Positions 4,982-35,905 of a stretch of DNA of 64,000 bases are shown one piece after another. The stretch covers positions 3,348,001-3,412,000 of the forward strand of contig JBLDXI010000019.1 of the NCBI GenBank assembly GCA_047495785.1, read 5' to 3'. Each line of letters opens with the position of its first letter. The stretch's first letter is position 1. Source of the stretch: Lepidodermella squamata (Eukaryota > Animalia > Gastrotricha). Position numbers and translations under genes: made by a program. Below the pieces are notes generated by a model that searched no databases, was not told the DNA's origin, and saw nothing but the letters and a program-made list of their open reading frames with translations.

Positions 4982-5501
4982 ATGTCGACGCCGTTTCACA
5001 CAACTTTCAACGATTTGGAAATGTTCTTCAAAAATCAAGTAACCAACTGTAAATCTATGATTGAAAAGGTGGGTCTACCTTGGTCTTTATTGGTCTACCT
5101 TGGTCTACATTGGTAAATTTTTATATTTTCTAGAATTTGGAGATTCCTCTCTTAGATGCTGAATACATGTATCTCCAACATATGAACAAGGTCGTCCGAC
5201 AGCGAAAAACTTACCTGAAGTACTACAAGCTGAAAAGAGAGCATAGGAAAGCGCTGCAGGAGGCTTACAAAGCTAACAAACTATCGCCATCAGATGGGCG
5301 TCTGCATACGTTTGCAGAGCAGCGATTCGAACAATTTCGTCAAATGAATAACCAAAAGTACCGCGGCCTTGTGCCTGTTTCACCTGCGAAATGCCAGTCC
5401 GAAGCTATTATTCGACTATTAAGGTCTTTGCACATGTGAGCTGATGTCATGTAACAATTTTCTTGAATGAAAAAGTTTGGTTTCCCTATTTTAGATGGTG
5501 A
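4982..5501 (+). CDS. Unnamed helical family, copy 1 (131 aa; exons 4982-5068, 5134-5435, 5495-5501)
   Basis: GT-AG introns keep the frame. Shares the family pattern AxxxYxxxM...Y(L/I/V)K..L...H...RL..FA..F....N.KY.G and the C-terminal IW*. Confidence 0.8.
5071..5114 (+). repeat. 10-bp tandem repeat (TGGTCTACCT-like, ~4 copies) in intron 1 of copy 1
   Basis: gggtctacct tggtctttat tggtctacct tggtctacat tggt. Confidence 0.85.
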
Positions 5502-6554
5502 CGCCCTTTTCAAATCTCGTCGAATCTTCTCTTCATTATCTTCCTTAATTTCGCGATTGGAACTTCAACTGGATGATTTATGATTTTATATTAAAGACAT
5601 GCGATTCTTCAAAAGTTATGGCGCATAATAACTTCATTGTTCCATTTTTAGCAAGTGGCTGAATATAATTTCCCCCGGTGAAATCATCCTGACGGTTCCT
5701 GTCCAAGTATTTTCTATAAAATAAATTTTCAGTTGATAAAGGATAAAGGCTCCATGATCCAGTCTCGCGTTATCGGGATTCACGAATTTGAAAAGCGTTT
5801 CTACGCTCATATTTTGATCTCAGCAGCATCTAGCATTAAATTTCTCCAAATCCTCTTTAAACTCTTGCAAAAATATATTCATCATCAATCATATTAGAGC
5901 ATCAATTCGATATGTCGCGGTTGATCAGATATTCTTTCCAACTTTGAATCAGGTTGATCCATTTTTGGCAAAATAACGCTGATTTTCAGCAATCAGGTTT
6001 CATCTGAATTACAAAAACTGAATTTCCTCGCATGTCTTTCGAAGTTCGTAGTGTGCGTCGGTTCTTACAACGGTTCTTGCAAATTGACGAATGCATAGAT
6101 ACAACCAGTCTGTTAGAGTGCAGCTGTACCATAAGGCAAGTCCGGGTCTCTGAGCCCATAATGTCGCGGCTATGAGCCTCTACACATATTTCCCTGGCTA
6201 AATAGACGAGGACGTAATTGGTGATTAAAATGTGTCGATGAGGAATTTAACCGAGAAATCTCTGCGCATGTAGAAATGTAGGCCCTCAAGAACCACAAAC
6301 CGGAAATCGAACTTCTGCAGATATGAGTCTTTTCGCTAATCCTTCAAAAAGCGATGCTATCAATTTGACCAATCTACATTGTATGGGCTCCAACTCGTCT
6401 CCGACCATCGTAATCCGGATAATGAGCCTCAACCCCGGGACAGTACTTCGTAATGAAGTCACTCATTGCCAGGTTATCGCATGTGGTTCAAAAACCTGCA
6501 GTAGGAACTAATACCTCACAAGCATCGACAAGTTCACTATAATAAAAATAGGAA

Positions 6555-7164
6555 ATGCCGAAAAATCGAGACTCAAAGCAGGGAGTCCAGTATATGGTCT
6601 CAAGTCTTATGGTTTTCGTCACTCGGCAGCTGTTCTTCACAAAATCTGACGACAGCGGCCTTTCAGCTCGGCTAATCCAAGCCGAGTCTTATTATTCGAA
6701 CCAAATGGATAATTACATGCGGCTAAAATCAAGATACATCAAGCATGCTAAGCTGGAACATGTTCATCGGAGATCGATCGCTGTTGCGAAACGGATATAT
6801 GACATTCCGATGGAGGACAATCGGTTAGAGACATTCGCGCAAAAGCAATTCACGTGCTACGAGTCGATGAATATTCAGCGGTATGGCGGTTGCTCGTTGA
6901 TGTTCGGCAGGCCCAACCAACAGCTTACAACTAAAACTAAAGTACTACGCAAACTTAGAATGTGAGTTCTTTTCGCTTCTCATCTATCAAGGGTCGGTGA
7001 ACAAAAATCAAGTATTTTCAAAATTTCAATAGATATTTAGCAGTAAGCTTTGTCTGAATCAAATTTCAGGAAATATTTACTTCGGGGGATGAGTGTATTT
7101 GTCTGCATTTTTACTAATGATCTATATATAAAGCTATTATCTCTTTAATACTTGCAGATGGTGA
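6555..7164 (+). CDS. Unnamed helical family, copy 2 (exons 6555-6961, 7158-7164)
   Basis: QAESYYSNQMDNY...YIKHAKLEHVH...RLETFAQKQF...NIQRYGG; the splice AT|gtgag...ttgcag|ATGGTGA gives RIW*. Confidence 0.8.
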
Positions 7165-7690
7165 GGAGGCTTCGACTCAGTCCACTGTCCGTTCTCTGCG
7201 ATAACATCTGGTTCCTGTTCATTCCTCTATAATAGCCGTCGTGTTCAATTTGCGAATAAAAATCTGAGAGTTATGAAAGTTCGCGGTTCTGATCTAAGAA
7301 AAGGCGGGCGGATATTGCGGGCTTGAAGTTCCGCTAATAAAGCATGTGACTTTTGGCTTGATCGCATTGATCTTGACAGAGTGAATACCTCCACTATATG
7401 CCTTCATATTCTCTCAAACAATGATACTTCGCAGCTGCTAAATTAATTCCATCCTCATCATTCCAGATTATCTTCACAATTCCATTGCATATACGCAAGA
7501 AGCCCTCGAATATGTCATCATTCAAGAAAATTAAATAAAAATCAGTAGGAATATACGCACTTACCTTTGCGTGAAACGTAAACACAGCATTGCGTATTAG
7601 GCCTTTAAAACTTTATATGCTTGTTCTGGAAATTTCGACCTTTTGCTTATTTCCAACTTTTTTCCAACCATGGGAAGGTTTTTTCAAGGA

Positions 7691-8348
7691 ATGTCTTTCC
7701 GGTCGACGAGATCGGTGAATTCTATTGTCAGCGGCAGCCTTCGAAAAACAGCTTCTGATTGTCAGTCTATGATAGCTAACCTCAGCAACAATGCCAATAA
7801 AAGTGTCCAGCGAAGCGAATCTTTAAATAAAGGCAAGAAAGAGGCGAAGGAAAATCTGACAAGCATAATGGCTGGTTTTGGCATGTTCATCAACCGACAA
7901 GTGGCCACAGCTAAAGCTCTCGCGATTAAAGGCTCGATCACCCCTCAAATGGAGGCTGAATTTCACTATCTCGACCGAATGAACGCCTCGCTGCAGGCCG
8001 CTAACGGTTACGTCAAGCATTCGAAACTGATAGAAATCCATCGATCGATAGTTCTTGAGTGCAAGTTGAATTACAGGTAAGCTTTTCATGATGATAATTA
8101 GTCATAATTAATCGATTTTTTCGATGACTCAGATTACCTAACCGCTGCCCTGAGTTTGACGTGTACTGTGCGCAGCAGTTCCCTTTCTATGAGCGTATGA
8201 ACGACTTGCGCTATAAGGGCCCGTTCGGTTCGCCAGCCCACGCTATACGTGCGAAGCGAAAACTTCTTCGCAAAGTTCACATGTATGAGAAAATTTATTG
8301 ATTTTTGTCAGCAAAAGCTTAGGTCATTTTCTTTCTTGTAGATGGTAA
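7691..8348 (+). CDS. Unnamed helical family, copy 3, N-terminally extended (exons 7691-8076, 8133-8282, 8342-8348; start may be 7670)
   Basis: EAEFHYLDRM...YVKHSKLIEIH; exon 2 reads FDVYCAQQFPFYERMNDLRYKGPFGSPA...LLRKVH; the terminal splice gives IW*. Confidence 0.8.
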
Positions 8349-8658
8349 CGAAGTCGAAGAGTCCGGTTCAGGTTTCAAGTAATCCAAGTTAATCCCTGTT
8401 GACTGATGATCAAACTATGTGTTTCAGTATTTTTGCGCTCGCAGGACAAAATAAAAAGACACTTTTTCGTGCTAAAATCTTAGACGGAAATTCTGAAGGA
8501 AACTGAACAATTTGAAAGCGTTTAGGACCTTGATGTTTGTCTTCTAAAAGTTCACGATAAGGAAGCAGTTCTAAGAATTTTACTTGTTCGAATACACCGG
8601 AAGAAAATTTCTAGCAAATCTATCACACGAATGTTTCTCGCATCAAGCGAATTCAAGT

Positions 8659-9471
8659 TCAAAGCCAATCTGGATGAATGATGAAATCCGTTGAGGTTCG
8701 GCGAACATTGTTGAAATGTGAGCCACGGCTCAGTGGTAAAATAGTCGAGACCTGCGGGTCCTCAAAATTCACGCCCTGCCTATCAGTCCAGACCCGCCCA
8801 TCCGGCAGGCGGCGGAAATCACCCAAATGATGCCAAGACGCGTACTGCCAGCGGTTTTTCCTCGTATTTGGGGTTAGCAGCCGTAGGAATTTCAACTTAG
8901 CAGCATCAGTGTTATCTTCCTTGCTCTCTTTTTCAGTTTTGTAGGTGTACGACTGATTTTCAATAGCTTTGGCCGCAGAGGGTTGCTTCTCCCGAGCCCA
9001 TTGCGGGTTTTGCAGTTTATCCATAAATTCTTTACCAGGCGCTGGCGTGGAGGGTGGACAGCCATTCCCGCCTAGCCAAGGCATTTTCGAGTCACTTGTG
9101 GGGGCGACTTGCTCCTTGGCCTTAGCTTGGTTTGTATACCATTTCAGCTCACGTTGCTGCTGTTGAGATTTCGGCGGAGTCTGTTGAGCGATTCTAGCCC
9201 CACATGTCGGACAGCATGCGTCTCCTGGCGGCCAGCAAATCGGTTGCTGCATTTGCTGGGTGAAGGAGTTAGGCCGTCTCCACGGGGCAGCAGCTGGTAT
9301 CTCCATTTTCTCGAATGTAACCGGGCAACTGCAAAATGCGCACTTCTTCCACTTCGCATATTGGGCTGATGAAAGAAAAATGCATTGTTGTATCGAATAA
9401 TGAACACAAATCAAACCATTTTTCAGCCGCTTGAGGTCTTTTTTAATGCCGGCTTCAAGAACTTCGTTCAT
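8659..9471 (-). CDS. Intronless hypothetical protein with CxxC motifs and Q/P-rich linker
   Basis: ~270-codon ORF from the first ATG (9471); motifs CAFCSC and CCPTCG; no family recognised. Confidence 0.55.
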   Translation of the reverse strand: MNEVLEAGIKKDLKRLKNGLICVHYSIQQCIFLSSAQYAKWKKCAFCSCPVTFEKMEIPAAAPWRRPNSFTQQMQQPICWPPGDACCPTCGARIAQQTPPKSQQQQRELKWYTNQAKAKEQVAPTSDSKMPWLGGNGCPPSTPAPGKEFMDKLQNPQWAREKQPSAAKAIENQSYTYKTEKESKEDNTDAAKLKFLRLLTPNTRKNRWQYASWHHLGDFRRLPDGRVWTDRQGVNFEDPQVSTILPLSRGSHFNNVRRTSTDFIIHPDWL

Positions 9472-11172
9472 GGTTAGTGGTCTGATAAAAAAATGAACTG
9501 GCTTATAATTCAAGCAGAATACAAGCAGAATCTTGTTTTCATCCGAACGTCTTTGAGAGCGTTTTCAGGGCGTGAAGTCTTGCCATGTCACCGTGGACAC
9601 GAGCGTTTTTGCTTTTCTATCTCAGAATTCTCAAAGGCGGCCTTTATGTCTTTATTTCTTTTGATGTTTATTTCTTTTTAATGGATAAATTTTTTTGCGG
9701 TAAGGTTTCGACACGCCCAACTGCGTCATAGTGCAGTTCAATAGGGTCGAGAAATCGTTTCACCTAATTAGCCACTGAAGCGAATAATGACGGCTTTCCT
9801 GAATTCTCAAGTAAATAAAGCAAATCTCGAATTATATCAAACTCATCGAATCCAAGTGAGCAATAATCCGAGCTAATGGCTGAGTTTCTCTAGGTTCTTC
9901 AATTTCGATTTTCAATGATATCGACTTCTAGCAAATGTCACCCTATTTCAGAGACGAGCATGTTGTAAAGATGAGTCTCCGTGACCTCGATACATTTTCA
10001 TTTCAGTGATTCAAAAAAATAATCCAAGCATAGCTTTTACTTTGATTAAAACTCCTACAAAATGTTCACTCACATGAGGCGAAAAGCCTATTAACCACGA
10101 ACCCGTGAATGAATATGGCGTCTGAAAGTAATAATTAATTAATTTAAACGAAGCATTAAATTCGCTTCGACAAATGAAGTTCCCAGCCAAATCCTGGATG
10201 ATCCGTCCTAATCTTCAAAAAATGCTTTATAAACAGCCCCGGGCGTGTGTAATCAACACATGCCACGTTTGCTAATCCCCAGAAAATTACAACAACCACA
10301 ATAGTAAGCTTTTGGCTCATTCACTATCGTGTCTGTTTATCTAAAAACGAAACATGTTTGATTTTCATCTGAAATGACATGGGTAGTGCACCAATTATTT
10401 ATATAAGTTTCCTAATAAATTAACCGTGACCAACTACACACAAGTTTCTGTCTCTTATAGTTTCATTCAACATACCAGAAGCTAATCTTCGTCGCACAAT
10501 TTTTTCCTCTAAATTTCTAGTTTTCCCTCGCTTGATGATTTCCAGAGTGTGAAGTAATCAGTAGGCGGCTGGAGAGGAAGGCGGAATTTAATAATTAGCA
10601 GGCAATTCAAGGATATCCAGGAAGTAAAGTGGCTGCGTTATTGCGTCAAAGTTCATCGAAAAGTGATATAACGTCTTGATTTTTCTAGACTAATAGCCTT
10701 TCGTAATTTTTTATTTCGCAAAAAACAACCGATAGTTACTAGAATGATCCCACTATTTCTTTCCGCCCATGATGCATTCGCTCTGCGGAGAGCGGCGGAA
10801 AATGTAGAGTCATATGATGTGATTTATCGCCGCTGCGGGCAATGTGAGTCATCATCAGAAGCTCCAGACGCTTCTATTTACCTTGCTCGTAGTGGCGGCC
10901 AGCGCAATTTGCTTCTGCGTCACCGGCCATCCGTGATCGCGAAGCAAATCGCATGATACTGGATTCGAGTGGCACATTAGTCGCGAGTAGGCTCTCTTAC
11001 TTCTGACACGGGGGGCAGGGCTTCCTGTTCGTGAGACAGGCGATATCCGCTGCGAATCAACGCTGATTGCCCATTAAAGAAAATCACTCGATTATGTTTT
11101 TCTCGCTCACATGATAATAATATACTTAACTTGATGATGTTTTTTCGCTCTAGATTTTTTTCCGAGAACAAA

Positions 11173-11626
11173 ATGACTAACGGGAGTCTGCACCAGGCTG
11201 TCAACGATTTGGCAGTGTTCCTATCTAAACAAATTCAGTCCTGCAAAACGCTGGTCGAGGACAACCTGGAATGGGAAGTTGTCCATGGCCAACAGCTTTA
11301 CAACCAGCGAATGACAGCCTATCTCACAGCGAATAAAGGGAAATACATCAAATACAGCGATTTAAAGGCCGAGCACCTTAGGGCGATCGCAGAGGCGAAG
11401 AAGCAAGCGAAAGTTGCGAACAACGACCAAAGGCTGAAAAAATTCGCCGACGAGCAATTCGTCGAATTTCGTAAGGCAAACGATGCGAAATATAAAGGAT
11501 TTTTCATGTCACCCGCCAAACCTTCGCCTCGCATCGTCGAACAAGCCTGTCACAAACTAAGAATGTTAGTTTTGAATTTTTTGAATTTTTCCTGGATTTA
11601 TTTGATTTTTTTCATCCAGATGGTGA
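11173..11626 (+). CDS. Unnamed helical family, copy 4 (exons 11173-11564, 11620-11626)
   Basis: LYNQRMTAY...YIKYSDLKAEH...RLKKFADEQF...NDAKYKGFFMSPA; the splice AT|gttag...ccag|ATGGTGA gives RIW*. Confidence 0.8.
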
Positions 11627-11968
11627 TTTTTGTTGATGGCATCTCTCACCTCACTCGTTTTGTCTCTCATTGAAACACCGGCTAAGTACGGCTCATATTG
11701 TGGATGAATAAACTCTGGTCAATTTATGTTGTCGCGTTTCTCACACCTACGAAACTTAATCCCGATGCCTTTTATCGTGTGTATGACATATCGTAAACCC
11801 GCCAACGCTTATTATTGAAATGTGTTAACAAAGCTGATGATTTTCTATTATATTTTGAAACTGAAAAATAAAACCTTACGGAAGAGACGCATGGCTAATT
11901 TTGGCTAATGAATCGCTCGAGTTGACAACAGCGTGAATTTCGGACATTTTTTATCTGTCTCAAATATT

Positions 11969-12247
11969 ATGCCGTATCTCCTAATCGAATCAACAGGGTT
12001 GAGATACCCACAGACACTGATTGGCGGCCATGAATCGGATGCAGCCTTGATGGCAGAATTAGGGGCCACTCGCGAGTCGACCTTCTTCGACGCGCCCTAT
12101 GTCTGCAATGAAGTCCCGGTTGTAGTTCTGGATAAATTGGAACAACTCGGCTACGTCGTTGTGTCACACAATGTTTGTCAATCGCTCGAAATTCCCGGAA
12201 AGCACCTATTTACGTGGACTCTTCATAAAAATCTGGACAAGAGCTAA
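11969..12247 (+). CDS. GCHFR: GTP cyclohydrolase I feedback regulatory protein (GFRP)-like, copy 1
   Basis: MPYLLI...TLIGGHESDAALMAELGA...PVVVLDKLEQLGYVVVS...WTLHK matches the GFRP pattern MPYLLIS...SDPELM..LGA...PRIVLDKLE..GFRVLS...WCLHK. Confidence 0.8.
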   Translation: MPYLLIESTGLRYPQTLIGGHESDAALMAELGATRESTFFDAPYVCNEVPVVVLDKLEQLGYVVVSHNVCQSLEIPGKHLFTWTLHKNLDKS

Positions 12248-12979
12248 TGATATTGTCACCGCTAATTGGAGGAAGCTGCATGTTGCAATTATATGTTTTG
12301 TCTTGACTGATGAGCGAATAAAATACATATCGACTTTTAATAGGGTGTGTTGTTATTCTTGCATTTTACTCCAATTCTTAGAGGAAGGCGGAATGAAAAA
12401 GGAAACATTGCGACTGAGAAAACTTCGAAATACCTAGGAATAAATTTATATAACACACCGAAAGAATTCTTCAATGGGGCTTTATAGACAAGTTCTTGTC
12501 ACTGCTTTCTCAGAAAAAATGAGCAGGTTTACGCAGGAAAATGACTAACATTCTATTTGCTTGTCACTATTCCAACGCTATGATGTTTTCACGTCAAAAT
12601 GGAACGCTATCTACCATCTGCCGCAACAAATTTGTGGAATATTTATCTTCGGGCCCAGCCCTTCAAGTTTGACCTCCTAATTGAGCTTATCATCCATCAT
12701 CCCTCTTCCTCTCATCAAATAACCAGGAAAAATGCGCAAGTGAAGCCCACACTGCGAACACAACGGAATTGTGTGGGTTGTGGGTTGTGTGGGTCTTTAC
12801 GATAAGATGCGATGCTAACTTTAACCTCAACTCGTTATCTCATGTATCGTATCTGAATACCTTTACAAATACCTTTGTTACACAACCCCATCCTACGACT
12901 CTCCCTCAAAAACCCCTTAAAAGGTCTATCACTTCACAATCAACTGCTGTGTTTTGCATTTTCTTCTTTGAAAGTTGAA

Positions 12980-13267
12980 ATGCCGCATCTGCTGGTCATT
13001 TGCTATACTGAGTCATCGATAATGCATGGGCCAACTACGATTACTGGTGGTGAAGGAACTAATTCAACATTAGGAATGGACCTTCGCAAAGTCGTAGGTG
13101 CGAAGCGGGACGATTGGCAATCAAAGGGAATCTATGAATCAACTGAACCGCCTGTTGTGATTTTAGACAAGCTCGAGAGCCTTGGCTACAACGTGACTTC
13201 ACAAACAAGTACGCAATATGCTGATGGCGGTTCTCGCTACATCTGGACGCTGCAGAAAAAGATCTGA
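12980..13267 (+). CDS. GFRP-like, copy 2
   Basis: MPHLLVI...GPTTITG...VGAKR...PPVVILDKLESLGYNVTS...WTLQK. Confidence 0.75.
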   Translation: MPHLLVICYTESSIMHGPTTITGGEGTNSTLGMDLRKVVGAKRDDWQSKGIYESTEPPVVILDKLESLGYNVTSQTSTQYADGGSRYIWTLQKKI

Positions 13268-13597
13268 GATTTTTGAAGAATTCGTAAACCTTGTTTGAAG
13301 CATTTCCTTCAATTCGCATGCATTGCGACAATGAAATAGTCGACGGAATTTTAGTATTGGAACATCGATTTAACATTCAACGCAATAAATGTCATTGTTT
13401 CGCATTTACTGCCAAATGATATAGTGCCGGGTGCCAGGTGGCGAGTAGCGAGTAAGACTAATTTAGCTGCGATAAGATTACAATATTTGGCAGCTTGATA
13501 TCGGGCAGAAATTTGTGAGATAAAGCGACGATGCCACGTTTTACTATGAAAGTCTAACTTACACAAGCAGAATTTAGTCCCCGAGTAATTCTTGCTG

Positions 13598-13857
13598 ATG
13601 CCTTACGTCGTTGTTAAAGCTTTTAGCTTGAATATCCTGAATTCACCTACGTCCAAGCTGAGCATCTAGTCGGGGATTTACTATACGACAACGACTTCCG
13701 CGAGGAAAGCGATGAATCGTTCATGAGTATGAACAACCCTGTAGCTGTTCTAAATAATTTGGAGAAATATGGTTATCGTGTAATATCTTATCAAATATGC
13801 CCAAATGCCAAGGCTGGACCGGGTCATTACCTATATACCTGGACTCTTCAGAAATGA
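13598..13857 (+). pseudogene. GFRP-like, copy 3, with a single -1 frameshift near 13627 (pseudogene or sequence error)
   Basis: MPYVVVKAFS in one frame continues as LEYPEFT...NNPVAVLNNLEKYGYRVISY...YTWTLQK* in the -1 frame; absent from the ORF track. Confidence 0.7.
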
Positions 13858-14760
13858 ATTCATAAATGAAATTTTGTTGTTTAAAGCTTTAAACAAGTTG
13901 TTCCGAATAAAATATGTACGCAGCTACACGAAGTTCATTATCAGTTGAACTTGGCTGATGAATATTTGATGGACCGAGGCTGGACATTACACACACCTAT
14001 ACTTGGCCTCTTCAGTAACGGCTGGATCTTCATAGTTGATTTTCTGTTAATTCGCGAATTAGATGTACTGGAAATCGTTCAATTTTCCTGTCTTAGGCAA
14101 GCCTAAAAGGAACTAAGACTAATTTGACGAGATGTTTGAAAGCATTTTTCAAGCTTTAGTCTGAAAAGTTGAAGTAGTATTGTCCGAAGTCCGGCGAAGC
14201 TAATTTCCTCACTTGAAAGAATTCATTTTTTACGAATCATCAATTCTCCGATCGCTCGACGCAACAGGATTTCGTCATTCTATTGACATCATCTTGCAGT
14301 CACATGACGAAACAAGCTGAATTTCCTGCAGAAGTTTGATCGTCAACAAAGAATGCTACTAAAAAGTACTAAAACTCTTGTGCAATATTCAATTCCCAGA
14401 TCGTAACATGAGTCGTATTTTACATTTTTTACGTGCGAGGTCCCATAGCTACAATAAATGTACGAGAAATAATGCGATATTATTACGGCTTGGGAATATA
14501 ATTAAGCGCGCCGGCCATTGCGCCATGCGAGAAAAATCCGATCGCCAGTGCTGCGACCGTCCATCTAGTGGATACTCAGTCGCATGCATTTTTTAATTGA
14601 ACGGAAGCCGACGCCATGGCAATACGGCCTTGTTTACACTGCCTTCTCGGTGCACGAATGGCGAGTTGAGACGGACCTACACCTTAGCAATCAATATATA
14701 CGTCAGTTGAAAAAATAACGCATCGCTAAGATGACTCATTGACTCGGCTACTCTACGGCT

Positions 14761-14769
14761 TATATAAAA
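14761..14769 (+). promoter_or_regulatory. TATA box upstream of family copy 5
   Basis: TATATAAAA ~60 nt before the ATG at 14824; a TGACTCA (AP-1-like) site lies at ~14732. Confidence 0.5.
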
Positions 14770-14823
14770 CCGGCGAATCAGCGACTTTTTCACAGATTAT
14801 TTCAAAACAATATCCGAGTGATT

Positions 14824-15331
14824 ATGGTCTCAACTCCGGCAGCTGCACTGGCTTTTAGCGAAATTTTTGATAACTTCTCGAATATCGGCCTCTTTTGGAC
14901 TAAGAAGGTCAACTGGGCCCGGCAAATGTGGCACACTGATTCCTCAACCCCAGCTGGAGCGCTAGCTCATGCTCAGTGTTATTACGCTAATAGAATGGAC
15001 GAATTTGTTGCGGAACGTTCGAAACAATGCAAGTACGTCAAGTACTACCGTTTGAAGGCTCAGCATAGGCAGACGATTAAGGAAGCATCATCCACCTACA
15101 ACTTGGGCACACCTGAGCGGTCGCGCTTCGATATGTTCGCGAAAAAGCTGTTTGCGTACTACCTTGCGGTCAACAACGCTCGTTACAACGGATTTTTCTT
15201 CAAACCCTCCGATAAAACCGGCCCAAGTGCGGATATCAAGATCAAGGTCGTTAGGCGTCTCAGAATGTAAGATTTTCCAAATATTTCCTCGAGCAAAAAT
15301 CTTACGCATTCATTTTTAATTCAGATTGTGA
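14824..15331 (+). CDS. Unnamed helical family, copy 5 (exons 14824-15266, 15325-15331)
   Basis: AQCYYANRMDEF...YVKYYRLKAQH...RFDMFAKKLF...NNARYNGFF; the splice AT|gtaag...ttcag|ATTGTGA gives RIL*. Confidence 0.8.
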
Positions 15332-16464
15332 TTGTTTTCCCGATAATTTGCCTCCAAAACTCGACTTGTTTTTCAATTTCGAACACCGGCAGCTCAGTGG
15401 GCTCGGTTCTTGCCTCTTTTTCTGGTTCAACTGCATCATCATTAATCCAAGCAATAAAAACGATATTTATCTTGACAGCTTTAATCCATTATTTATGACA
15501 ATTTTTGTACCATTGATGATTCCTCGGTCGCTAATCTCGTTTTTCATTATTAGGGACGAGAATAGCATTCGATATTTCAATAAAGTCCTTGAAATCATGT
15601 TTTTTCCACTTAAAAAGCTTATGAGTATCATTTTTGAAACGCGGAACCCTAAACTTCAGTGCTACCGTTCCTCACAGGCGATATCGTATAGTCCAAGAAA
15701 TTTGAACAAAAGCGAGCGGATAATCATTTTGTTGAACGCCGGAGCCCTTCGATTCATCTCTTCTCCGAATATCGAATCCCACTATCGGATATTATATTGG
15801 TAGAAAGTGTCTATTTCTGTTTCAGTTCCGACATTTTCTAGCTCTGGAAACATTTGGCCGAGTGAATTTTTCGAATATCATTTTCAGATACCCATTAGTG
15901 ATTCATCAAACGTGCCTCGGCAGCTTTCTACCCTATCGCAGATCCCAGGCCAGCTCGAAAAAATATCACTCCCCAGAGACAGGAGCTGATTAACACAGGT
16001 GACTAATGTATGCGTATGCCAATTCTCGACCAACCCTAGATCGATGATTGTGCACTGAGAGAGCGAGTGAGTGAGTAAGCATGCATGAGTAAACAATCGA
16101 GGGGCGCCGCGCCTGTAAATGCTACGGAAGTCAAGCCTAAATTTGAAAATAAATTTTTTCCACTTAACAGGCCGATACACCGGAAAACACACATTACGCC
16201 GTGTGACCATGAGAACCTAGACGCGATGAATAAATCATCAGTTGCCAGGGTTGCGCTAATAATAGCTGCGTGTTTACCTTACCATGCGTCATATCGCGGA
16301 TCGCTATTTCGCTTCTTGCCTTTGCTCAAGACGTAAAAAAACGCACTTGTAAATCTTGGTTTCTAAGAAACGACTACAAATCGATATTACGCTACATTTT
16401 CGATATTTACACACCCCGTTCGTACCTTGGCAACGGTAGTGGAAATGATTCACGGCCCTGAAGC

Positions 16465-16472
16465 TATATAAA
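16465..16472 (+). promoter_or_regulatory. TATA box upstream of family copy 6
   Basis: TATATAAA ~75 nt before the ATG at 16542. Confidence 0.45.
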
Positions 16473-16541
16473 GAGAGTCAAGAATAATTTATTTCAAAAA
16501 TCCAAGCATATTTTGCAATTTGCTCTGAAACACATTTTAAC

Positions 16542-16955
16542 ATGGAAACCGACCTACTTCTGTACAACAAGGCCGAAATCGAGCAGGCCGTTGCCCATCT
16601 AGCCAAACAGCTCGCCAACTGTCGTTCAATGCTGTCGAACTCTCGAGGAATCACAGCTCCTTTAATCGGCGCTGAAAATTTCTACCTAGACCGGATGGAA
16701 TGCTACGTCAAAGCCCATGATCGGTACTTGAAGTACCACAAGCTTCGGAAGGTTCACAAGGAAGCGATCAGCGATGCGAAACTGCTGTTCAGGATCGACC
16801 CTCTCGATCGTCGGCTGGATCTGTTTGCCGAGGAGCACTTTGACTACTACGCTTACATTAATAACTCAAAATATCAGGGAATTTTCGGCTCTCCAGCTCG
16901 CAGACGAACGTCTCCTGTCATTACCCGACTTCTCCGCACAACCCGAATTTGGTGA
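16542..16955 (+). CDS. Unnamed helical family, copy 6 (intronless, 137 aa)
   Basis: GAENFYLDRMECY...YLKYHKLRKVH...RLDLFAEEHF...NNSKYQGIFGSPA...TRIW*, encoded without the terminal intron. Confidence 0.85.
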   Translation: METDLLLYNKAEIEQAVAHLAKQLANCRSMLSNSRGITAPLIGAENFYLDRMECYVKAHDRYLKYHKLRKVHKEAISDAKLLFRIDPLDRRLDLFAEEHFDYYAYINNSKYQGIFGSPARRRTSPVITRLLRTTRIW

Positions 16956-19697: not shown

Positions 19698-20419
19698 AAA
19701 GAGACTCGGCTCTAGCAATGAACACTTTCTTAATTTGTTTGAATTGATAACAGACGCGTATTGCGCGTGTCCAGATATCACTCGAATCGCTTTCAAATTT
19801 AATTTCGATGATGAGCAGGGATGAAGGTCTCCAATAATGAATGTTGTCAGCATTTCACATATCTATAGATTAGATTAGAGATTTGACTCGCACCTGGAAA
19901 ATATGAGATTGGAATTCGGGAAATTCACGACGAACATTATTTTCTAGAGGCTTTACTCAATCTAAAATAAAGAACCTGGTTTGTCAAACTACTACAGGAG
20001 AAAATTCGAGTCCCGAAAACCGCGGCATAGCAAAATCATAACAATTCAAATAAACCATACAAAATTTAAAGGGCAGTTTTAAATCGATTTAAATCCTTCG
20101 AACTGATCGAATCTTTCCGTGCCCTGTGAACCTTTTTGCAGCATGGAGAAGTATACGTGGAGTTTTTCGCGAATCTCGATTTAGCCATTGGCAATGCTTT
20201 TGAAAGATGAAATGCTATGCGAAATGCACTGATTATCTAGAGGCAAGCGATTTACTAGATCAACTGCCCTCAACTGAGTAGCCGGTGCTAATCATCCGGC
20301 TTTGTACACTTTCTCAAGCACTTCCCTTGATTAAATTTACAGTAGCCGCCCGAGCATTTTCGCTGATTAAGATATGTTTCATCTCTGAGTTCATCATTCA
20401 TCTGACATCCATCATCAAC

Positions 20420-22840
20420 ATGATTGAAAAGCGACAAGAGTGGCTCGATGCCGCTGTAGCTTTGCATGACTACCAACTCTCCAAATTCGCGAAAGACAAT
20501 TCGCTGGGCGATGTTGGCAGTTTCGAATCCGCCCCTTGGTTCGTCCTGGTTGGAGATGAGCTCAGCGAAAAAATCCGTCTCATCGAATCACTTGCTGAGA
20601 AGCCTACTGTGGACTCCCTAAAACTACAACAATGCAACGCCTTTATCGACACTACTCTACAACGACCAGCAGTGTTCATTTTAAGAAAGGGTGAACGTCA
20701 CTATGTATCGATCTGCGAAGAAGCCAAGTCGCTAGGCGACGAGATATCAGTAGCCAAAGCGTCGAGTTTTACGGATTTAATTGATAACCCAAAATTGAAT
20801 GTTCTCAGTGAGAAGCCTGTTTTCGTCAAAGTATCCGGGAAAGACTGCATTGGAGCGACTTTTGTCATAAATCCTCACTCTGAGATGCCGATATTAGAGG
20901 GCGGAACTTTTGAATCATGCATCGCTAGCAAATGCCCGATTCTCATGTTGAAATACCCGCCGACTGAATGGCAGGCGAGACGAATCGATTTCGAGCAGTA
21001 TCTCGAAGATTTGTTGTACGACTACTACGGCGAGATGAGGTCGATAGGCACTGAACGGGCTATTTTGGTCGTTCATGGACTAGAATCCGGAAAAACTTTC
21101 CTCAGGTCGAAACATCTCGACCATTTTCTTCATGTTGCTAAGACAGTAGGTTTAGACTCACGTCGAATCGTTTTCGCATCTTTGAAAGGTGATCCCGCCA
21201 CGGATTTGGCGAAAACAATGGAGATCACTCATCCGGAACGATATCACATAGGCATGGAAGCCTTAGTAGCCCTTCTTGAAAACGAATTAATTGAATCAAT
21301 TATGAAGTCTGTCAATGCTGTTTCAGCTATGGCTAACTCTCAATTCCGGAAACTGATAAAGGTTGACCCGGAGCGGTGTCCGGATTCGTTTGACAAGGAC
21401 GAGAGTTACTATGAAAGAATGGCCGAGGACTACCTTGAACTTATCTATGAGGCCGTTCAGGTTTGTGCTGAGAATGATAGATCGAGGCTTGAGCTTTGCT
21501 TAAAGCGATCCCCAACAGTTCGAGTCGATGAACATGGCGCGATTGAGGAAATCATGTCAGCGATTTGCTACAACTTCAGTGAAGAAATGTTCAATTTCCC
21601 GTCAAAAAGTTTGTTACTGACTACCCTTCTAGGAGATTTAGAGCAGAAAAAGCTTGAATTGGGGCCGTTTCAAGGCAGTAATCGACTGATTTCTCAGATG
21701 AGCAAGTATCTATCAGGGAAAGAAGCTGTTTCACGGCTCTTATCCCTATCTGGCTATAGCTTACTCGAAAACTTTCGACCGATCGACTTCTCATCGGATG
21801 AAATCTTGGCCATGGGAGAAATCGTACCCGGGAGAGGTTTCATCTGCTCGAAAGCTGTCGAAAAGATGATAGACCAACGCCGCCCTGACATTGAATATAT
21901 TGAAAGCCTGGTTCAATGGTGTGTTTGGCTATTTGTTCGACAGGCCCCGCTAATCTGTGAAAGGATCCGGTTGATCGCTAAGTTGGATATCGACTCTGAG
22001 TTTCCGAGACTGGCTGACAGATTTGATGATACAATTTCCGAGGTCTGTAAAGCCTTTTTCGAGCAGAAGGCGCAAAACTTGATAACCGAAGCCGCGAAAA
22101 TGATCAGATTTCGCTATGATATCGCTAGATTCGATGATTTAGTCCTAACGACACATCTTTTAGGCTATTCGTGCTTCAAACCTACAACTTACGATGCTCC
22201 CAGGCAGAAGCGGATGTTTAATAGGACTTTAAGTATCTCTGTCAACCTTTCCGACCAACCTTTTGACGCTTTTCAAATGGAATCACCGTCTAGTTCTTTT
22301 GAAGAGTGCGTTTTCTCATCAGCTGGCAAGTGCGATGTCAATTTCGATGCGGTAACTGCTAATCAAGTCGACCACTACAGAGAGGCGATCAATAGTGCCG
22401 CTGAGGCATTTGCTAGGTACAAATACGGCTCTGTGATCGCTGATATATGCGCACTGATTGAACACGAATTCTCCGCAGCTTCAATAGCTGATTCTTTCGC
22501 CGAAATCAGGCGTAGAGTCTCTGTTAAAAATGCCCTCTGCAGCTATGCAAAATGCATGTTCAAAGTTGCGAGGCTTCGTTACAACCGTTTGGCGCTGGAA
22601 AAATGCCGCTGGGCTGAAGTGACCCTCCGAAATCTTGTTGATTTAGTTCTGAAGCTGGAAAATTGCCGGAGCGGGCTTGGCTCTCCCGCACCGAAAAGCA
22701 GCAATGAAATGAAGCAAACGGCTCGAGCTGTTCTCAAGGAACTTCAGGAGGATGTGGGAATTCTAGAAGAATACGTGCAAGAGGACATTTTAATGGACGG
22801 CTGGGGCACGCAATACATAGCTATGACTCCGCATGAATGA
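20420..22840 (+). CDS. Intronless dynamin-superfamily-like protein with degenerate GTPase motifs (~806 aa)
   Basis: APWFVLVGDELSEKIRLIESL (G1 position), TTLQRPAVFIL (G2), SEKPVFVKVSGKDCIGATFVINP (G3) and HIGMEALVALLENEL (end of G domain), followed by a long helical stalk-like region. First ATG at 20420. Confidence 0.6.
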   Translation: MIEKRQEWLDAAVALHDYQLSKFAKDNSLGDVGSFESAPWFVLVGDELSEKIRLIESLAEKPTVDSLKLQQCNAFIDTTLQRPAVFILRKGERHYVSICEEAKSLGDEISVAKASSFTDLIDNPKLNVLSEKPVFVKVSGKDCIGATFVINPHSEMPILEGGTFESCIASKCPILMLKYPPTEWQARRIDFEQYLEDLLYDYYGEMRSIGTERAILVVHGLESGKTFLRSKHLDHFLHVAKTVGLDSRRIVFASLKGDPATDLAKTMEITHPERYHIGMEALVALLENELIESIMKSVNAVSAMANSQFRKLIKVDPERCPDSFDKDESYYERMAEDYLELIYEAVQVCAENDRSRLELCLKRSPTVRVDEHGAIEEIMSAICYNFSEEMFNFPSKSLLLTTLLGDLEQKKLELGPFQGSNRLISQMSKYLSGKEAVSRLLSLSGYSLLENFRPIDFSSDEILAMGEIVPGRGFICSKAVEKMIDQRRPDIEYIESLVQWCVWLFVRQAPLICERIRLIAKLDIDSEFPRLADRFDDTISEVCKAFFEQKAQNLITEAAKMIRFRYDIARFDDLVLTTHLLGYSCFKPTTYDAPRQKRMFNRTLSISVNLSDQPFDAFQMESPSSSFEECVFSSAGKCDVNFDAVTANQVDHYREAINSAAEAFARYKYGSVIADICALIEHEFSAASIADSFAEIRRRVSVKNALCSYAKCMFKVARLRYNRLALEKCRWAEVTLRNLVDLVLKLENCRSGLGSPAPKSSNEMKQTARAVLKELQEDVGILEEYVQEDILMDGWGTQYIAMTPHE

Positions 22841-23488
22841 ACTGCCGAAACCCACGAGACTATGCCAAACCCCATTTTCATTCATGTCGTACCTTTACGT
22901 TGAATAAATATGTATATATAAGCAGAAGTTTAAATACCTTGATATGATTACTTTGGAGACGCAGGAATATCGATAATTTTTTATTTTTTTCATTACGATC
23001 AGAAATGTTTCGTTCCGGTTTTTGCCAGTCCCCACGTCTATCTTGCCGAAATCATTTCTGTTAATCTCATTAGAACCCGATAAGCATGAGGTGCGTGGAC
23101 AAGTTATTTTGGGGGTATTTCGTGGTTTATAGTGGCTGGGATTTCAGTACATTGTATTATACGTAAATTAAGAGTGTTATGAGAAATGAGAATATTGCAT
23201 GATATGAGGGAGGCGGAAATGAGAGACGATGTTGCCTATTTACGCTTTTCATTGCGTGCTCGTATTTTCGTATGAGGCCCTTCGACATTACTAGATCATA
23301 AGTGATAAACAAAAGCTTTTCATGAAAAAAGAGAGAAGTCTTCCCGTCGCACGGAATTTCATCTCCAGATTTGTCTCTTCAGTTTGAAATTTATTACATC
23401 AATTGATCGATATTATTCACCATGATCTTTCCTATATTAATTTTTAACTAATCCGTATGTTAAGATACCAAGGTGTTTGTTTGATGTT

Positions 23489-23663
23489 AGAATGGCCGTC
23501 AAATTTTATTCTTCTTAGTTCTCATCTTCGATGAATGTTACCCGACTTCATTTCCCCAGCTTTATCACCATATACTTGCTGGGAATTCTATCTTTGGAAG
23601 TTTTCTCAATTTCAAGGGCTCCAAAAGAATCGGAAAATCTGTATGATATTGGTAATTGCTTAC
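23489..23663. repeat. 175-bp inverted repeat, left arm (partner 24985-25159)
   Basis: Reverse-complement match; ORFs 23535+ and 25113- share an identical N-terminal translation. Confidence 0.95.
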
Positions 23664-23907
23664 AATCAAAAGATCTTTTTCAGCAATCATGATAAATATT
23701 ATTTCAGAGGCCATGGTAAGGGCGATGATGGCCCAAAAGGACATAAAGAACCTGTATGGCTTGGTTGGAGCGATACTAAACGAGAAAAACCTGCGATGTA
23801 AAACCGACCAACAATGTGGCTTGAGCATGCCGCCGGTAATGCTGGATAGCAAACTCGGACGAAAATCTAGCCGAGTATACAGCATATCAAAATTCGGAAA
23901 TCCATGA
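23531..23907 (+). CDS. Small secreted protein / candidate neuropeptide precursor (exons 23531-23651, 23708-23907; 106 aa)
   Basis: Hydrophobic N-terminus MNVTRLHFPSFITIYLLGILSLEVFS; a phase-1 56-nt GT-AG intron joins in frame to ...NLR-CKTDQQCGLSMPPVMLDSKLGRKSSRVYSISKFGNP*; AATAAA at ~23955. Confidence 0.65.
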
Positions 23908-24432
23908 TCTCTAGATTTATATCGAATTCCGTGGACAAATGGTATATCATTTCTAATAAAGTGTAAAGTGTGACAAGTGTTGTGAATGATTTTTTTTTCT
24001 CGACTACAAGGGTAATTAATTCAGCGTCTTCGATATTGGACCTTGAATGACCTTGCTATATCTAACTAAGCCCGATAATTAAAATATCGGTTTGGCCTGA
24101 GAATTCGGTACATCCCGTATTTCATCTTTTTCGGAAGTTTTCGAAAATTTCAGTCTGTTTTATTGCCTGAAGAACGATTGTTAATTTAGATAATGTACGC
24201 CATGGTTATGCCTGACAGTTCATTACTGAAACTTTTATTTTGAAGTCAGCTATCTGACACTACCTACCTTTTTAATTTGCCTTTAATGATCTCGAATCAA
24301 TGTGTTATTAGCTTGATTACTCGCAAAGTCGTGTAATATAATCATTAAAATGGAATGAACATATACGTATGAAAGTGAATCAACCAACCGCTCCGGACTT
24401 CGGACGTTTGTTATTCCGTTAAAATTTGTAGA

Positions 24433-24984
24433 ACGAATACGAATACGAATACGAATACGAATGATTTTATTTGACTTCCACTCGACTAAGGCGTCTATAC
24501 CCTTTCGGGTTTTGTGGAAGGCGAAGGAAGGCAAAATTTAAGAAAAAACGCCCACCCCCGCAGTTAGCAATTTGCTTTTACCATAAAATTCATAATTTTC
24601 CAATTCTGAGACCGTTGTTTGCCATTCATCTCTATTTAATGCAGTTAATTCTGTGGCGTGCCAGTCCACGTCTTCTACTATTATCTCAATCGAGTTTGAC
24701 CCATCTTTCTTGGGTCGTCCTCGAGAGCCATCGGTTTTTTTCCTAATAGTTGTTTTTGATGTGAGGCCTACTTTAATTAGGCTTCTTTCTACGCATTTTA
24801 ACCAATAAATTTGAGGTTTTCCTACTGGCCTGACCCAACCTTCTGGAGTCTGCCATCTATATATGTCGTACACTGGGCCGGGTTCGAGAGGCTTTCCGTC
24901 TTTGTCTACATAGGTTTGCATTCTTATTATGTGACCAAGATAATTGAGGCGTTGTTTTTCTATTAATCTACTCACTTCTATCAC
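24433..24984 (-). mobile_element. 5'-truncated RTE-like non-LTR retrotransposon 3' end with (ATTCGT)5 tail
   Basis: RLNYLGHIIRM...RPVGKPQIYW...NRDEW is the typical RTE ORF C-terminus; microsatellite tail at 24433-24462. Confidence 0.8.
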
Positions 24985-25159
24985 GTAAGCAATTACCAAT
25001 ATCATACAGATTTTCCGATTCTTTTGGAGCCCTTGAAATTGAGAAAACTTCCAAAGATAGAATTCCCAGCAAGTATATGGTGATAAAGCTGGGGAAATGA
25101 AGTCGGGTAACATTCATCGAAGATGAGAACTAAGAAGAATAAAATTTGACGGCCATTCT
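24985..25159. repeat. 175-bp inverted repeat, right arm
   Basis: Inverted copy of 23489-23663, directly abutting the LINE 5' truncation point. Confidence 0.95.
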
Positions 25160-25257
25160 TTTTCCTCCTTTTTCCTCCTCGATTTTCCTCCTTAAAAAGA
25201 AAGCAAAGATCTCTCCGATCCCATTGTCTGCTTTTGCTGTCAACTCAATTCTCTCAG

Positions 25258-25859
25258 GTGCAGGATCAGCCACCCAAAGAGTAGCAGCGCCTCGTTCAAA
25301 TGAATCTCAATTCCGATTTCCAATGTATATTAAACTTACCTACGTCGCGTTAATTGTGTTCTGCCTCATCCTAACCATAGCTTGGATAGTTTCTGAGCAA
25401 TTCCTTGAATGGAATTCTACCTCGACTATTGTTTTCGATGAGTTGAATGACGTGTACTTCGATGTTACTATTACCCGATGCGGTAGCAAGCACCAGACTG
25501 AGTGGTCTTTAGCCCTCGTTTTGTTCAACGTCCTCGTCCTATTTTTCGCATGTTTCTGTACATTCGAATCTCGAACGTTGCGAATGTCATCCGTATCCAA
25601 ATTCGAGAAAAGAGTTGTCGTGGCGTCTGTTGCAAATCTCTCAACACTATTCCTCGGTTTCCTCCTGATTGTTGTCACGCAAGAATCTGAATTCAACCGC
25701 ATAACGGCCCTGGCAGTCGGAAATTTAATAATTTCTCTCTCAGATGCTCTGATAACTCATCTGCCAGCTTTGTGGAAATGGAAGGTGCACGCGGAACTTC
25801 GAAATAAGACAGCTTCAACTTTCAATGGAACGTCTGGCAATTCGGATGGACGATGGTGA
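25258..25859 (+). CDS. Class C GPCR (GABA-B-like) 7TM fragment, approximately TM4-TM7; upstream exons not found
   Basis: LILTIAWIVSE...TRCGSKHQTEW...LVLFFACFCTFESRTL...HLPAL resembles GABA-B TM4-ECL2-TM5-TM7 (W...C.S...W...LAWETR...FVPK); candidate acceptor ctctcag at 25257. Confidence 0.55.
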
Positions 25860-33400: not shown

Positions 33401-35905
33401 CCTCTTCAAAACCGGAAACGGTACACGACACTCAGTCTCGAAGAGGCAAAATAAAACTATTATTATTATATTATAAAATAAAACTATTATTATTATTAAT
33501 TCAGGAGTAATTTTTGACGAAATTATTATTCTAATTAACGATAGTAATGCGCTGCTGGAATTCACAACTTGTCCCACAATATGCGCAACCATTTATTTAA
33601 TTTAGCAACTTTTTGTAGGAAATTCAACTGAGGAAATTTTAAATTCAAACCTTATCCTTTATCCGCGATTTAAACGTAAAAAATAAATTTACCGAAGAAA
33701 ACCCGGTAAACCCCGATGACAACTGGTTTGGTAATTTTCGGAATTTCACAGTTTCGACCAAATTTCTCCGAACTTTTTTAATCCCATTAACAATTGTCAT
33801 ACACGTAATTTTCTCTTCTCGTGATTTTTTTTGAATTTTTCTAAAAATTTACTGGCCAAGAGTTGTGGCTTCGTCCCTAATTTTAGACTTTCTGGACCCT
33901 TTTTTCCGTTTATTATCTTCGCTTACGCTACATATGCGACACACGCTGTATTAACTGATAGGTAATAATTTGCTTACCATATAAGCTTCACTAGCAACAG
34001 GCCGATTGAGAAATTTCGAATCGACCAAAATTTGCGACATGGTTGGCCGTTCGATTGGATTTTTGCGCAGTAAGGCCCTCACAAAATCACGAATTTCCGA
34101 ACTGTACCGCTTCGAAATCGGCACCGGGTTGCCGTTGATGACGTGGTCTTTGAAATGCCGGTCTTCTTGTTCGATGAACGGAAATTTGAACGTGGCGAGG
34201 CGATAGATGACCACGCCCAGCATCCACGAGTCGCTTTTACGCGACAATTTGTGATGCGTGAGCACTTCGGGCGGGCAGTACGGCAAAAGACGGCTTCGAT
34301 CACCTTGACCAACCCTGATATTTCAAAATAATTTTCAAATTTTTCGGAATAATTTTAGGAATTTTAGAAATTTTCAGGAATTTCGGAATTTATTTTAAAA
34401 TTTTCGGGACTAAATGAAAAATTATTTCTCCCATGACATAAGTTTCCTTCAACTTTGAGAATATCCAATATTGTAATAGTCGTAAAATTATTCTTAATTT
34501 ATTCTAATTAATTTTTCTCTAATGCCAAGCCGAAGTTCCAATATCAAAACTGAGTAACTCACTGATTCAAAGTTTCATAGCAGCCCAATTCGCCCAGTTT
34601 CACAAATCGGCGCTCTCCCAGCAGGAAAATATTCTTCAAAAAATGATAAAAATACTAGAAAATGTTTTCATTGGCTTCAATCGATTTTACCTGAGTTTTA
34701 ACGTCGCGATGAGCGATGCCGTGGCCGTGAAGAAATTGCAGGGCCATGACGATTTGACGGGCCCAGGCGCAGATTTGCGTCTCGGGAAAGGGCTTATTCT
34801 CTTGAACGGCCGCCTCCAGATCACCGGCGTGGCAATACTCGAGAACGACGTGGATAACGTCGTCGCCAACAAATTTTTCTAAAAATAAATTATAAGAGGA
34901 TTGAGGATTTATGATAGATACTCCGTTGATCGGGCTTCAATTTCTTTTTGGAAACACTTAAAGCCGATAACAGATAACATGTGAAGCCATTCAAATCAAA
35001 GCTTCGCAAGCAAAAAGTTAAATTTTTCACAGAAATTCTGAACTATCTACCATTCTTCCATTTCATGTCAAGCAATAAAATCGGCCACTTGGATTATTGC
35101 CAGTTGGGGCAAGTCAAACCAATATGGCTTCACAGATCACGTGCGACCTCAATTACTCATTATTAAAGCAATCCTAATCGGAATTTCACCTTAAATGCTT
35201 CGTAGTAAAAAAATGTCATATTCAAACGTTCAGCTTTGGAAAAAATTGCCCAATAAATTTGCTAGAATATTCATCAGCACAATCACGTCAATGTCATGAG
35301 GTAAAAAATGAAAGTTTCAGGTTTAAAATCAGCCTAAAATTAAAGAGAAACGGCAATGAAAAGTGCCAGCAATAAACCCTTCAAAGTACCGCTTCTTCGC
35401 TGAATTAATTTGAACCTCCTCAAAATCCAGAAATTATTAAAATTGTAAATTCTTCGAAGATTAGGGTTTTTTCGGGATGAGCTGACCCCCTTGGAAGAAG
35501 AGAAACGCGGTTCGAAAACTACGATGCTCAGTATAACTATTTATTGAGGGCTTCAAAAATAGTAATTTTCAAAAAATCTCACCTTCGAATGAGCTAAGAA
35601 CTCGAATTATACTCGAATGCTGCAAGCTCATCATCAATCCAGCCTATAAATCGCCATTTAATTACGAATTAAACGCGAAATAAATGACAATAATCAGGTT
35701 CACACACCTGAGCTCGAACTCGTTTATTGAGAAACGCTGATGTAGCTGCATCACCACTGAACTCGCCCTTGATAAGACCGGTGTTATACTGGCGAACGAC
35801 GAACAGCGAGCCGCACTTTTTCCGCTTGACGAGATCAACCTGGCCGTAGCAGCCCTGGCCGAGCTTGCGAATCACCTCGTAGTCACTTCGGCATGATATC
35901 GACAT
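27453..35905 (-). CDS. NEK-like pseudokinase-SAM-ankyrin repeat protein, 924 aa (exons 35905-35708, 35643-35583, 34878-34691, 34633-34563, 34314-33978, 32488-31856, 28791-28174, 28121-27453)
   Basis: Kinase motifs LGQGCYG, HRDVKTQNIF, YCPPE, KSDSWMLG, NPIERPT; SAM-like LSADMLAQMNDDQIRALFPEMG; many ankyrin repeats (TPLHQAA, TPLIRAA). All seven introns are GT-AG and phase compatible. Confidence 0.75.
29918..31141 (+). CDS. Secreted intronless IPT/TIG + AMOP domain protein (Mesh/SUSD2-like fragment), nested in an intron
   Basis: Signal peptide; GDCF...ILCTF...RAICYPP (IPT-like); CNAW...GHECYYDRNGQL...HF...ACC...CSNYYDARR (AMOP-like); TATAAAA at ~29847 and AATAAA at ~31194. Confidence 0.75.
   Translation: MSVLSAILLASAVFIGSISANSCNNFGFDGKDRSVMGHEPLIFYGDCFKECDAKILCTFNDEIRGEAIKVEREGKIDASLFAHPRAICYPPYLFKLGPMDVQVDLVRPNGEKINIDTVRVNIVQSSPDVEVNIKDDVLEISHGDLTPVAVVSEVATVNVTLVWFNARHQNKRRLEDLYTIEVNVPYRPNTVFSVAKPSMAALAATGDKVDERKRAILSTYLVVSVRPMKLAHGGQHPFHPQAAVFSAFIPALKMYPEFQPTHGNGVCNAWFQITPKVSAPVSCSPTVDRVDPSIFKSKQEERYSGANSRAALSEGASAALKYESYVPMGPVNFPNSNFKITVGHECYYDRNGQLVQDWKQGAGSAQFYSAYADEREHFYENENSWFACCHNQEDSTYCSNYYDARRV
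33024..33497 (+). mobile_element. RTE-like LINE 3' fragment with duplicated (TAT)n tail, intronic
   Basis: WTPPLGWFAPRGRPRTRW...RSLIKVGLT...DEW...YEFY aligns with the element at 24433-24984. Confidence 0.75.

Follow-up and report, generated by a model that had tools for sequence, protein, structure and literature searches.

An apparently nucleotide-dead dynamin relative and its live paralogue in the gastrotrich Lepidodermella squamata

Dynamins are textbook mechanochemical GTPases. As in P-loop GTPases at large, the residues of their G1 to G4 motifs bind phosphates, Mg2+ and the guanine base. Pseudo-GTPase members of the family have been recognised only lately, an example being the fungal protein Mmc1 (Mug99), a self-associating pseudoenzyme that resembles a dynamin-related protein (DRP) and has been proposed to act as a scaffold (10.1101/2023.10.03.560745). 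Dynamin paralogues can also depend on one another, as in Dictyostelium, where DlpA and DlpB form obligate hetero-oligomers (PMC8565484); in DlpA-C the G domain is the only domain that the libraries recognise (PMC8565484). Class C dynamins have been recorded in plants, stramenopiles, Amoebozoa and one giant virus but are not known in animals (PMC11789081). Our subject is a gene of the gastrotrich Lepidodermella squamata, which we call X. It lies on the plus strand at 20420-22840 of a 64,000-nucleotide stretch (assembly GCA_047495785.1, contig JBLDXI010000019.1, positions 3,348,001 to 3,412,000 of the forward strand), referred to here as the window. We put at roughly 60% the probability that X is a catalytically dead member of a small, previously unnamed eukaryotic DRP lineage, acting through its stalk as a scaffold or as a modulator of a live paralogue.

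Mmc1 resembles X in its dynamin-like architecture, in the loss of the residues for GTP binding and hydrolysis and in its weak sequence conservation. Unlike X, it begins with a presequence for mitochondria, has transmembrane segments at its C-terminus and resembles the dynamin-like proteins of bacteria. X, by contrast, derives from a eukaryotic-type DRP, shares its genome with a live paralogue, and shows neither a transmembrane segment nor a presequence-like N-terminus (its highest 19-residue Kyte-Doolittle mean is 1.32, and its first 30 residues are net acidic). DRP5A, DRP5B (ARC5) and DlpA-C differ from X in being active GTPases, although their recognition through the G domain only is a trait they share with the live relatives of X. 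These relatives are two, the paralogue on contig C43 of the animal's own assembly and a protein from elsewhere, P0001. Both follow the order of X over its whole length (strand before G1, G core, stalk motifs, variable linker, C-terminal helices) and, like X, are single-exon; unlike X, they have intact G1-G4 motifs and end in a coiled coil and an acidic tail. Drp1/Dnm1, dynamin, Mx and OPA1 show the same order as this family (N-terminal helix, G domain, long helical region, variable insert, C-terminal helices), and their G domains are matched by the family in sequence and by a model of the C43 paralogue in fold, while X itself would be catalytically dead.

X occupies an open reading frame (ORF) that runs from 20285 to 22840 on the plus strand of the window. 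Its first ATG, with an A at -3, is at 20420 and leaves 806 codons and a stop, giving a protein of 91.5 kDa with an isoelectric point of 5.2. One allele in the DNA run described below has a 1-bp insertion at 20360, within the upstream extension of the frame, so the stretch before 20420 is taken as non-coding and X as translated from 20420.

20420..22840 (+): complete single-exon coding sequence of X, 806 amino acids plus stop, from the ORF, RNA contig cover and synonymous variants
22903..22908 (+): AATAAA polyadenylation signal, 63 nt past the stop of X; RNA cover ends in the bin 22864-23047

That X is a member of the dynamin family, as a sequence-only reading of the window had proposed, is supported by transitive homology through its paralogue. 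A six-frame search of the animal's own genome with X found one relative, on contig C43 (E = 1.4e-14), in a 943-residue open frame that matches Dynamin_N above the Pfam cut-off; the hit found by X on C43 covers X residues 287-582.

L002:523-3318, equal to G000:C43:132428-135223 (+): live paralogue of X, 931 amino acids, single exon, G1-G4 intact, C-terminal coiled coil and acidic tail

BLASTP aligns X with this paralogue at 1e-21 over X residues 39-581 (about 540 residues), beginning exactly at the strand before the P-loop, and again in the C-terminal helices, where X 639-681 pairs with paralogue residues 729-771 at 2e-05. The paralogue in turn matches Pfam Dynamin_N at 3e-12 and the PDB chains of Mx2, dynamin-1 and Drp1 at about 1e-8. 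Its AlphaFold model, built from a nine-row alignment, is reliable in the G domain only, where the predicted local distance difference test (pLDDT) stands at 70-89. Foldseek places that model closest to Drp1, MxB, dynamin and OPA1 (about 1e-12). An Atlas shape search returned generic dynamin rows only, with template-modelling scores below 0.4.

The family has a third member. A search of 5.8 billion clusters restricted to the G domain of the C43 paralogue gave a sole outside relative, P0001 (2.7e-31; ENA ERZ21831265), a protein of 1034 amino acids with intact G motifs and Dynamin_N as its only recognised domain; a word search with the whole paralogue was empty, and the metagenome contigs, viral contigs and prokaryotic genomes scanned held no relatives. 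X aligns with the P0001 stalk at 2e-10 over residues 273-582, and the P0001 G domain matches PDB dynamins at about 1e-6. Run against the PDB, a profile of X and the C43 paralogue reaches plant DRP1A at 1.6e-7 and, more weakly, Drp1 (2e-4). When all three proteins are combined, the profile finds X and the C43 paralogue only in the own genome, the next-best matches being the G domains of OPA1 and then of Drp. X by itself has no match in NCBIfam. Features from a protein language model (ESM) point the same way as the paralogue bridge: X scores 0.96, with 204 of 256 features shared, and the ten best family sets all carry Dynamin_N.

Two observations on these relatives stand apart. The C43 paralogue, outside its G domain, is no less an orphan than X, and its annotated start may be too far upstream, as its Met19 aligns with the start of P0001. 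On the P0001 side, ctg71799c of ENA ERZ21831265 (L013:1-14247) is a tandem array with a period of 3575 bp and at least four intronless copies of the P0001 gene. Two full-length copies that were compared are 99.9% identical, a third is apparently frameshifted (products of 501 and 418 amino acids), and the contig has 58% GC, 73% GC at third codon positions (GC3) and pyrimidine-rich spacers.

Set against the two live proteins, the G domain of X is recognisable in register and altered at every motif.

20534..21193 (+): degenerate G (GTPase) domain, residues 39-258, by in-register alignment to the Dynamin_N of the C43 paralogue
20552..20575 (+): G1/P-loop remnant GDELSEKI, residues 45-52; GLQTAGKS and GMQSSGKT in the live members
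20648..20668 (+): G2/switch I remnant DTTLQRP, with Leu80 at the position of the catalytic Thr; NTGTRCP and KTGTRCP in the live members
20855..20878 (+): G3/switch II remnant ATFVINPH, with INPH at residues 150-153; IDLPG in the live members
21068..21088 (+): G4 remnant VVHGLES, with HGLE in place of SRLD, by three-way alignment

The three-way alignment gives GxQxxGK[ST], TGTRCP, IDLPG and SRLD for the C43 paralogue and P0001. The signature of an active GTPase (G1 GxxxxGK[ST], a G2 Thr, G3 DxxG and G4 [TNS][KR]xD) is absent from X: in G1, Glu stands in place of the Gly before the Lys and Ile in place of the Mg-binding Ser/Thr, with Lys51 and the following Arg kept; in G3 the Asp and Gly are replaced by Ile and His; and the G4 Asp is Glu. 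The readings of G1 as GDELSEKI and of G3 as INPH, made before the relatives were known, prove exact and fall opposite GLQTAGKS/GMQSSGKT and DLPG, and the dead nucleotide pocket that they implied holds at sequence level and now extends to G2 and G4. Because four motifs are lost together, binding of Mg-GTP by X is very unlikely, and it is well supported by the alignment that X is a pseudo-GTPase derivative in which all four nucleotide-binding motifs have been destroyed.

Behind the G domain, residues 259-806 are predicted to be helical.

21194..22174 (+): all-helical middle or stalk-like region, residues 259-585, the family's best conserved part, by BLASTP and predicted helices
22001-22012 (+): F-P-R-L motif, matching YPRL of classical dynamin middle domains, by alignment
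22175..22339 (+): Ser-rich, poorly conserved linker of variable length, residues 586-640, by alignment
22340..22837 (+): C-terminal helical region, residues 641-806, GED-like by position, by BLASTP segment and alignment

The stalk of X retains invariant residues of the family in the motifs W..WL and [YF]PR[LM]xD, and its [YF]PRL lies at a dynamin-like distance from an upstream stretch resembling [DE]EI..G..F..A[FV]E. By position and helicity it is likely to be a dynamin stalk. The linker may occupy the place of the dynamin PH domain, B-insert or paddle, judged by its position in the order of parts. Dynamin_M, GED, PH and OPA1_C find no match in X, the C43 paralogue or P0001, and the stalk models of X and the C43 paralogue have a pLDDT below 50. 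X also ends without the terminal coiled coil and acidic tail common to both live members. The two halves of the protein have fared differently. In the G domain the C43 paralogue and P0001 are 38% identical and X is 24% identical to either, whereas in the stalk (X residues 259-585) the live members share 21% with one another and X shares 21-23% with either of them. By these figures, what X has given up is no more than the surplus of conservation demanded by an active nucleotide pocket; its stalk changes as fast as is usual in the family.

The gene X is real, being transcribed and kept under purifying selection. Two public runs contain the stretch, one from 2015 (X1), whose kind is guessed only, and a DNA run (X2). 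In the gene just upstream of X, contigs of X1 skip three introns with GT..AG borders, each 52-57 bp long (19024/19077, 19232/19288 and 19388/19446), and those of X2 do not, so X1 behaves as RNA. Its cover over X spans 20472-22863, the ORF body and a short 3' untranslated region, without a splice joint, and it drops to nothing in the bins between genes, 20104-20471 and 23048-23415; since the ORF is covered and its flanks are not, X is transcribed as a single exon. At 44-46% GC, a 2.4-kb frame without stops far exceeds chance. The variants tell the same story. The best-supported 40 of 94 variant places were listed, and each of the 23 that fall within the ORF is synonymous (a third codon position in 21 cases, the first position of a Leu or Arg codon in 2; binomial p = 7e-16, with 22% of sites synonymous), which independently confirms the coding frame. 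The indels among the same 40 places all lie outside the ORF, at 19737-20360 and 23937-24120. A 2.4 kb uninterrupted ORF kept as a functional gene beside intron-rich ones, as the window had been read, is thus borne out: the frame holds 806 codons with no splice joint inside, the upstream gene has several short introns in RNA contigs, and transcription goes together with purely synonymous listed variation. About 12 fold-back joints of the 'opposite strands' kind, some 100 nt apart, occur in the X1 contigs between 20535 and 22723; most probably they are artefacts, introduced by the assembly or the library into a transcriptome of low depth.

X arose from a common stock with the C43 paralogue and lost G1-G4 while the conservation of its stalk was held. 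We propose that, unable to bind or hydrolyse Mg-GTP, X would do no mechanochemical work and would act instead via its stalk, the oligomerising part of dynamins, without nucleotide-driven movement. It might self-assemble into a static scaffold; or it might co-assemble with the live C43 paralogue and modulate the polymer by capping, damping or recruitment. Having neither coiled coil nor acidic tail, it probably also forgoes the contact, be it with a partner or for targeting, that the tail provides in the live members. A scaffold or decoy had been suggested for X at the outset. The part of that suggestion in which a dead gene is kept functional has stood, through transcription and synonymous variation, while the scaffold mechanism itself is still conjecture. 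More tentatively, and at well below even odds, X, the C43 paralogue and P0001 might make up an undescribed DRP lineage, built of a G domain, a private stalk and a terminal coiled coil, in which the animal has evolved and kept a nucleotide-dead subunit, one that forms joint polymers with the live enzyme and tunes it.

Several results weigh against our reading of X as a dead, stalk-acting DRP. Searched alone, X matches no Pfam family even at E = 10 and finds only chance-level MAP-kinase matches among PDB sequences; a word search of 5.8 billion clusters and an exhaustive phmmer search of 1.84 billion representatives both returned nothing. The AlphaFold model of X, from a two-row alignment, has a pLDDT of 36 and is unusable. 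The family stalk does not match classical Dynamin_M significantly (hhalign E = 0.35; shuffled Smith-Waterman z at most 2.4), and its homology to the dynamin stalk rests on position, helicity and two short motifs. A further 54 variant places are unlisted, and the listed variants in X begin at codon 226, with none in the first 225. The retained P-loop Lys, finally, leaves room for an atypical nucleotide contact. On this last point one might build a different protein, in which X still binds a nucleotide or other ligand in an atypical manner and acts as a switch rather than a passive scaffold. Lys51 is kept with the Arg that follows it, and the G-like domain is of full length and still under selection, the listed synonymous-only variants running from codon 226. 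We nonetheless think such a switch quite improbable, given Glu for the Gly before the Lys, Ile for the Ser/Thr, Leu for the switch I Thr, Ile and His for the G3 Asp and Gly and Glu for the G4 Asp, and given a domain to which Dynamin_N is blind even at E = 10. Lost motifs and the want of database relatives of its own might suggest that X is a decaying pseudogene or a functionless chance ORF, a view we find scarcely credible. Its 806-codon frame is intact and transcribed, with RNA cover that ends at the gene borders, and indels, frequent just outside the ORF in the listed set, are not found inside it; with all 23 listed variants synonymous and the listed indels confined to the outside, decay is for practical purposes ruled out.

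The class and origin of X are best judged beside the other dynamin genes of this genome.

L005:421-2760, equal to G000:C19, about 950-952 kb (-): OPA1 orthologue, one 780-codon ORF, with a presequence-like N-terminus, Dynamin_N and OPA1_C
L006-L009, equal to G000:C2, around 544-545 kb and 1053-1080 kb (-): four single-exon Mx-like genes, with Dynamin_N and Dynamin_M, 616-673 amino acids

Three of the four Mx-like genes are 97-99% identical and lie 11-15 kb apart.

According to the sequence-only reading, X resembles the DRP5/ARC5/DlpA class (class C), which is not standard in animals, and was possibly gained by horizontal transfer or retroposition, with its lack of introns as a sign of either. 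Some of what we found hints weakly at that class. Dynamin_N is the sole recognised Pfam domain in the live relatives, as it is in DlpA-C (PMC8565484), and among the ESM clusters closest to X are some of diatoms and plants that are almost Dynamin_N-only; OPA1, the next-best own-genome match of the family profile, groups loosely with DRP5 and DrpC (PMC11789081). X falls inside none of the Mx-like, Drp and OPA1 clades in a tree of own-genome sequences and P0001, nesting there having been named as the observation that would tell against transfer. In that G-domain tree, with the genome's own Drp, OPA1 and Mx-like genes, the three family members split off with 99/100 support, although the branch of X is saturated and its pairing with the C43 paralogue is weak (60/52). 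Nor does the family look Mx-like (class B), for among the own-genome sequences and the family only it stands outside the own-genome Mx-like clade (99/100) and has no Dynamin_M or GED match. Recognition through Dynamin_N only, however, is not specific to class C. The DRP5/ARC5 motifs cited as a mark of the class (a hydrophobic strand before G1, a strand before DxPG and a helix after the G domain) are found in every kind of dynamin, and in the PDB the live members stand roughly as far from Mx as from Drp1, dynamin and OPA1. As for transfer, the family is very rare, with one outside relative among 5.8 billion clusters in the G-domain search. P0001 comes from an organism of high GC content, with intronless genes in tandem arrays of a protist-like kind, and all three members are without introns. 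Gastrotrichs and their kin are barely sampled, which makes rarity weak evidence and explains it equally well, and the scans brought up no viral, prokaryotic or metagenomic relatives. The two copies in this genome are old and strongly diverged, and host-like in composition (X has 46% GC and 48% GC3, and the C43 paralogue is likewise); they lie among spliced host genes and host debris of the long interspersed nuclear element (LINE) type, X itself between a spliced host gene and retrotransposon debris of which the genome holds at least 150 copies. The absence of introns says little either way. The OPA1 orthologue is one ORF, so long single-exon genes are normal here for vertically inherited genes, and the four Mx-like genes, a tandem group, and the C43 paralogue are single ORFs too. 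A horizontal origin of the family is thus possible but unsupported, and a class C dynamin acquired by transfer strikes us as unlikely. The thought that X is a retrogene, copied from a dynamin gene with introns, prompted by a single exon beside a gene with several short introns, we hold to be very improbable: its sole relative in the genome is also a single exon, as are the OPA1 and Mx-like genes, and no poly(A) tract follows X or its polyadenylation signal, while target-site duplications were not searched for.

In the window beyond X, a 191-residue ORF at 24538-25113 (-) has no Pfam match and at least 150 matches in the genome, some of them inside ORFs of about 1100 amino acids; its motif suggests the C-terminal end of a LINE-type retrotransposon. 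The first 44 residues of this ORF appear again, inverted, at 23535-23801 (+), and a related fragment sits just upstream of the C43 paralogue (G000:C43:131181-131429). Beyond it, at 25146-25859 (+), a 237-residue ORF has several hydrophobic stretches and no Pfam match. Protein-kinase exons beside ankyrin repeats occur near both X and its paralogue, at 34185-34870 (-) of the window and at L014:4010-4390 (G000:C43). The kinase exon has at least 150 genome matches (443 candidates), many in local clusters, marking a very large lineage-specific kinase expansion. A segmental duplication, considered from the kinase, ankyrin and unknown-ORF surroundings that X and the C43 paralogue share, was rejected because the kinase and the unknown ORF are both highly repeated; and membership of X in the neighbouring tandem family at 4982-16955 was rejected for want of any similarity. 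In the 3' region of the gene upstream of X, one contig of the DNA run X2 has 28 other bases in place of 141 bp at 19808-19950. The depth of that contig is 48.8, about half of the total (about 107 at neighbouring places), and the loose end at 19808 is seen in an RNA contig of X1 as well.

In the literature searched we found no report of an animal dynamin pseudo-GTPase in a pair of active and dead members. With its live paralogue and a shared stalk, X would offer a clean system in which to study what the stalk does without nucleotide turnover, be it scaffolding, capping or the regulation of a polymer. The dynamin family includes lineages that domain libraries can see through the G domain only, and once that domain has died, as it appears to have done in X, a member escapes all standard searches. 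Genes of this kind have therefore probably been under-counted.

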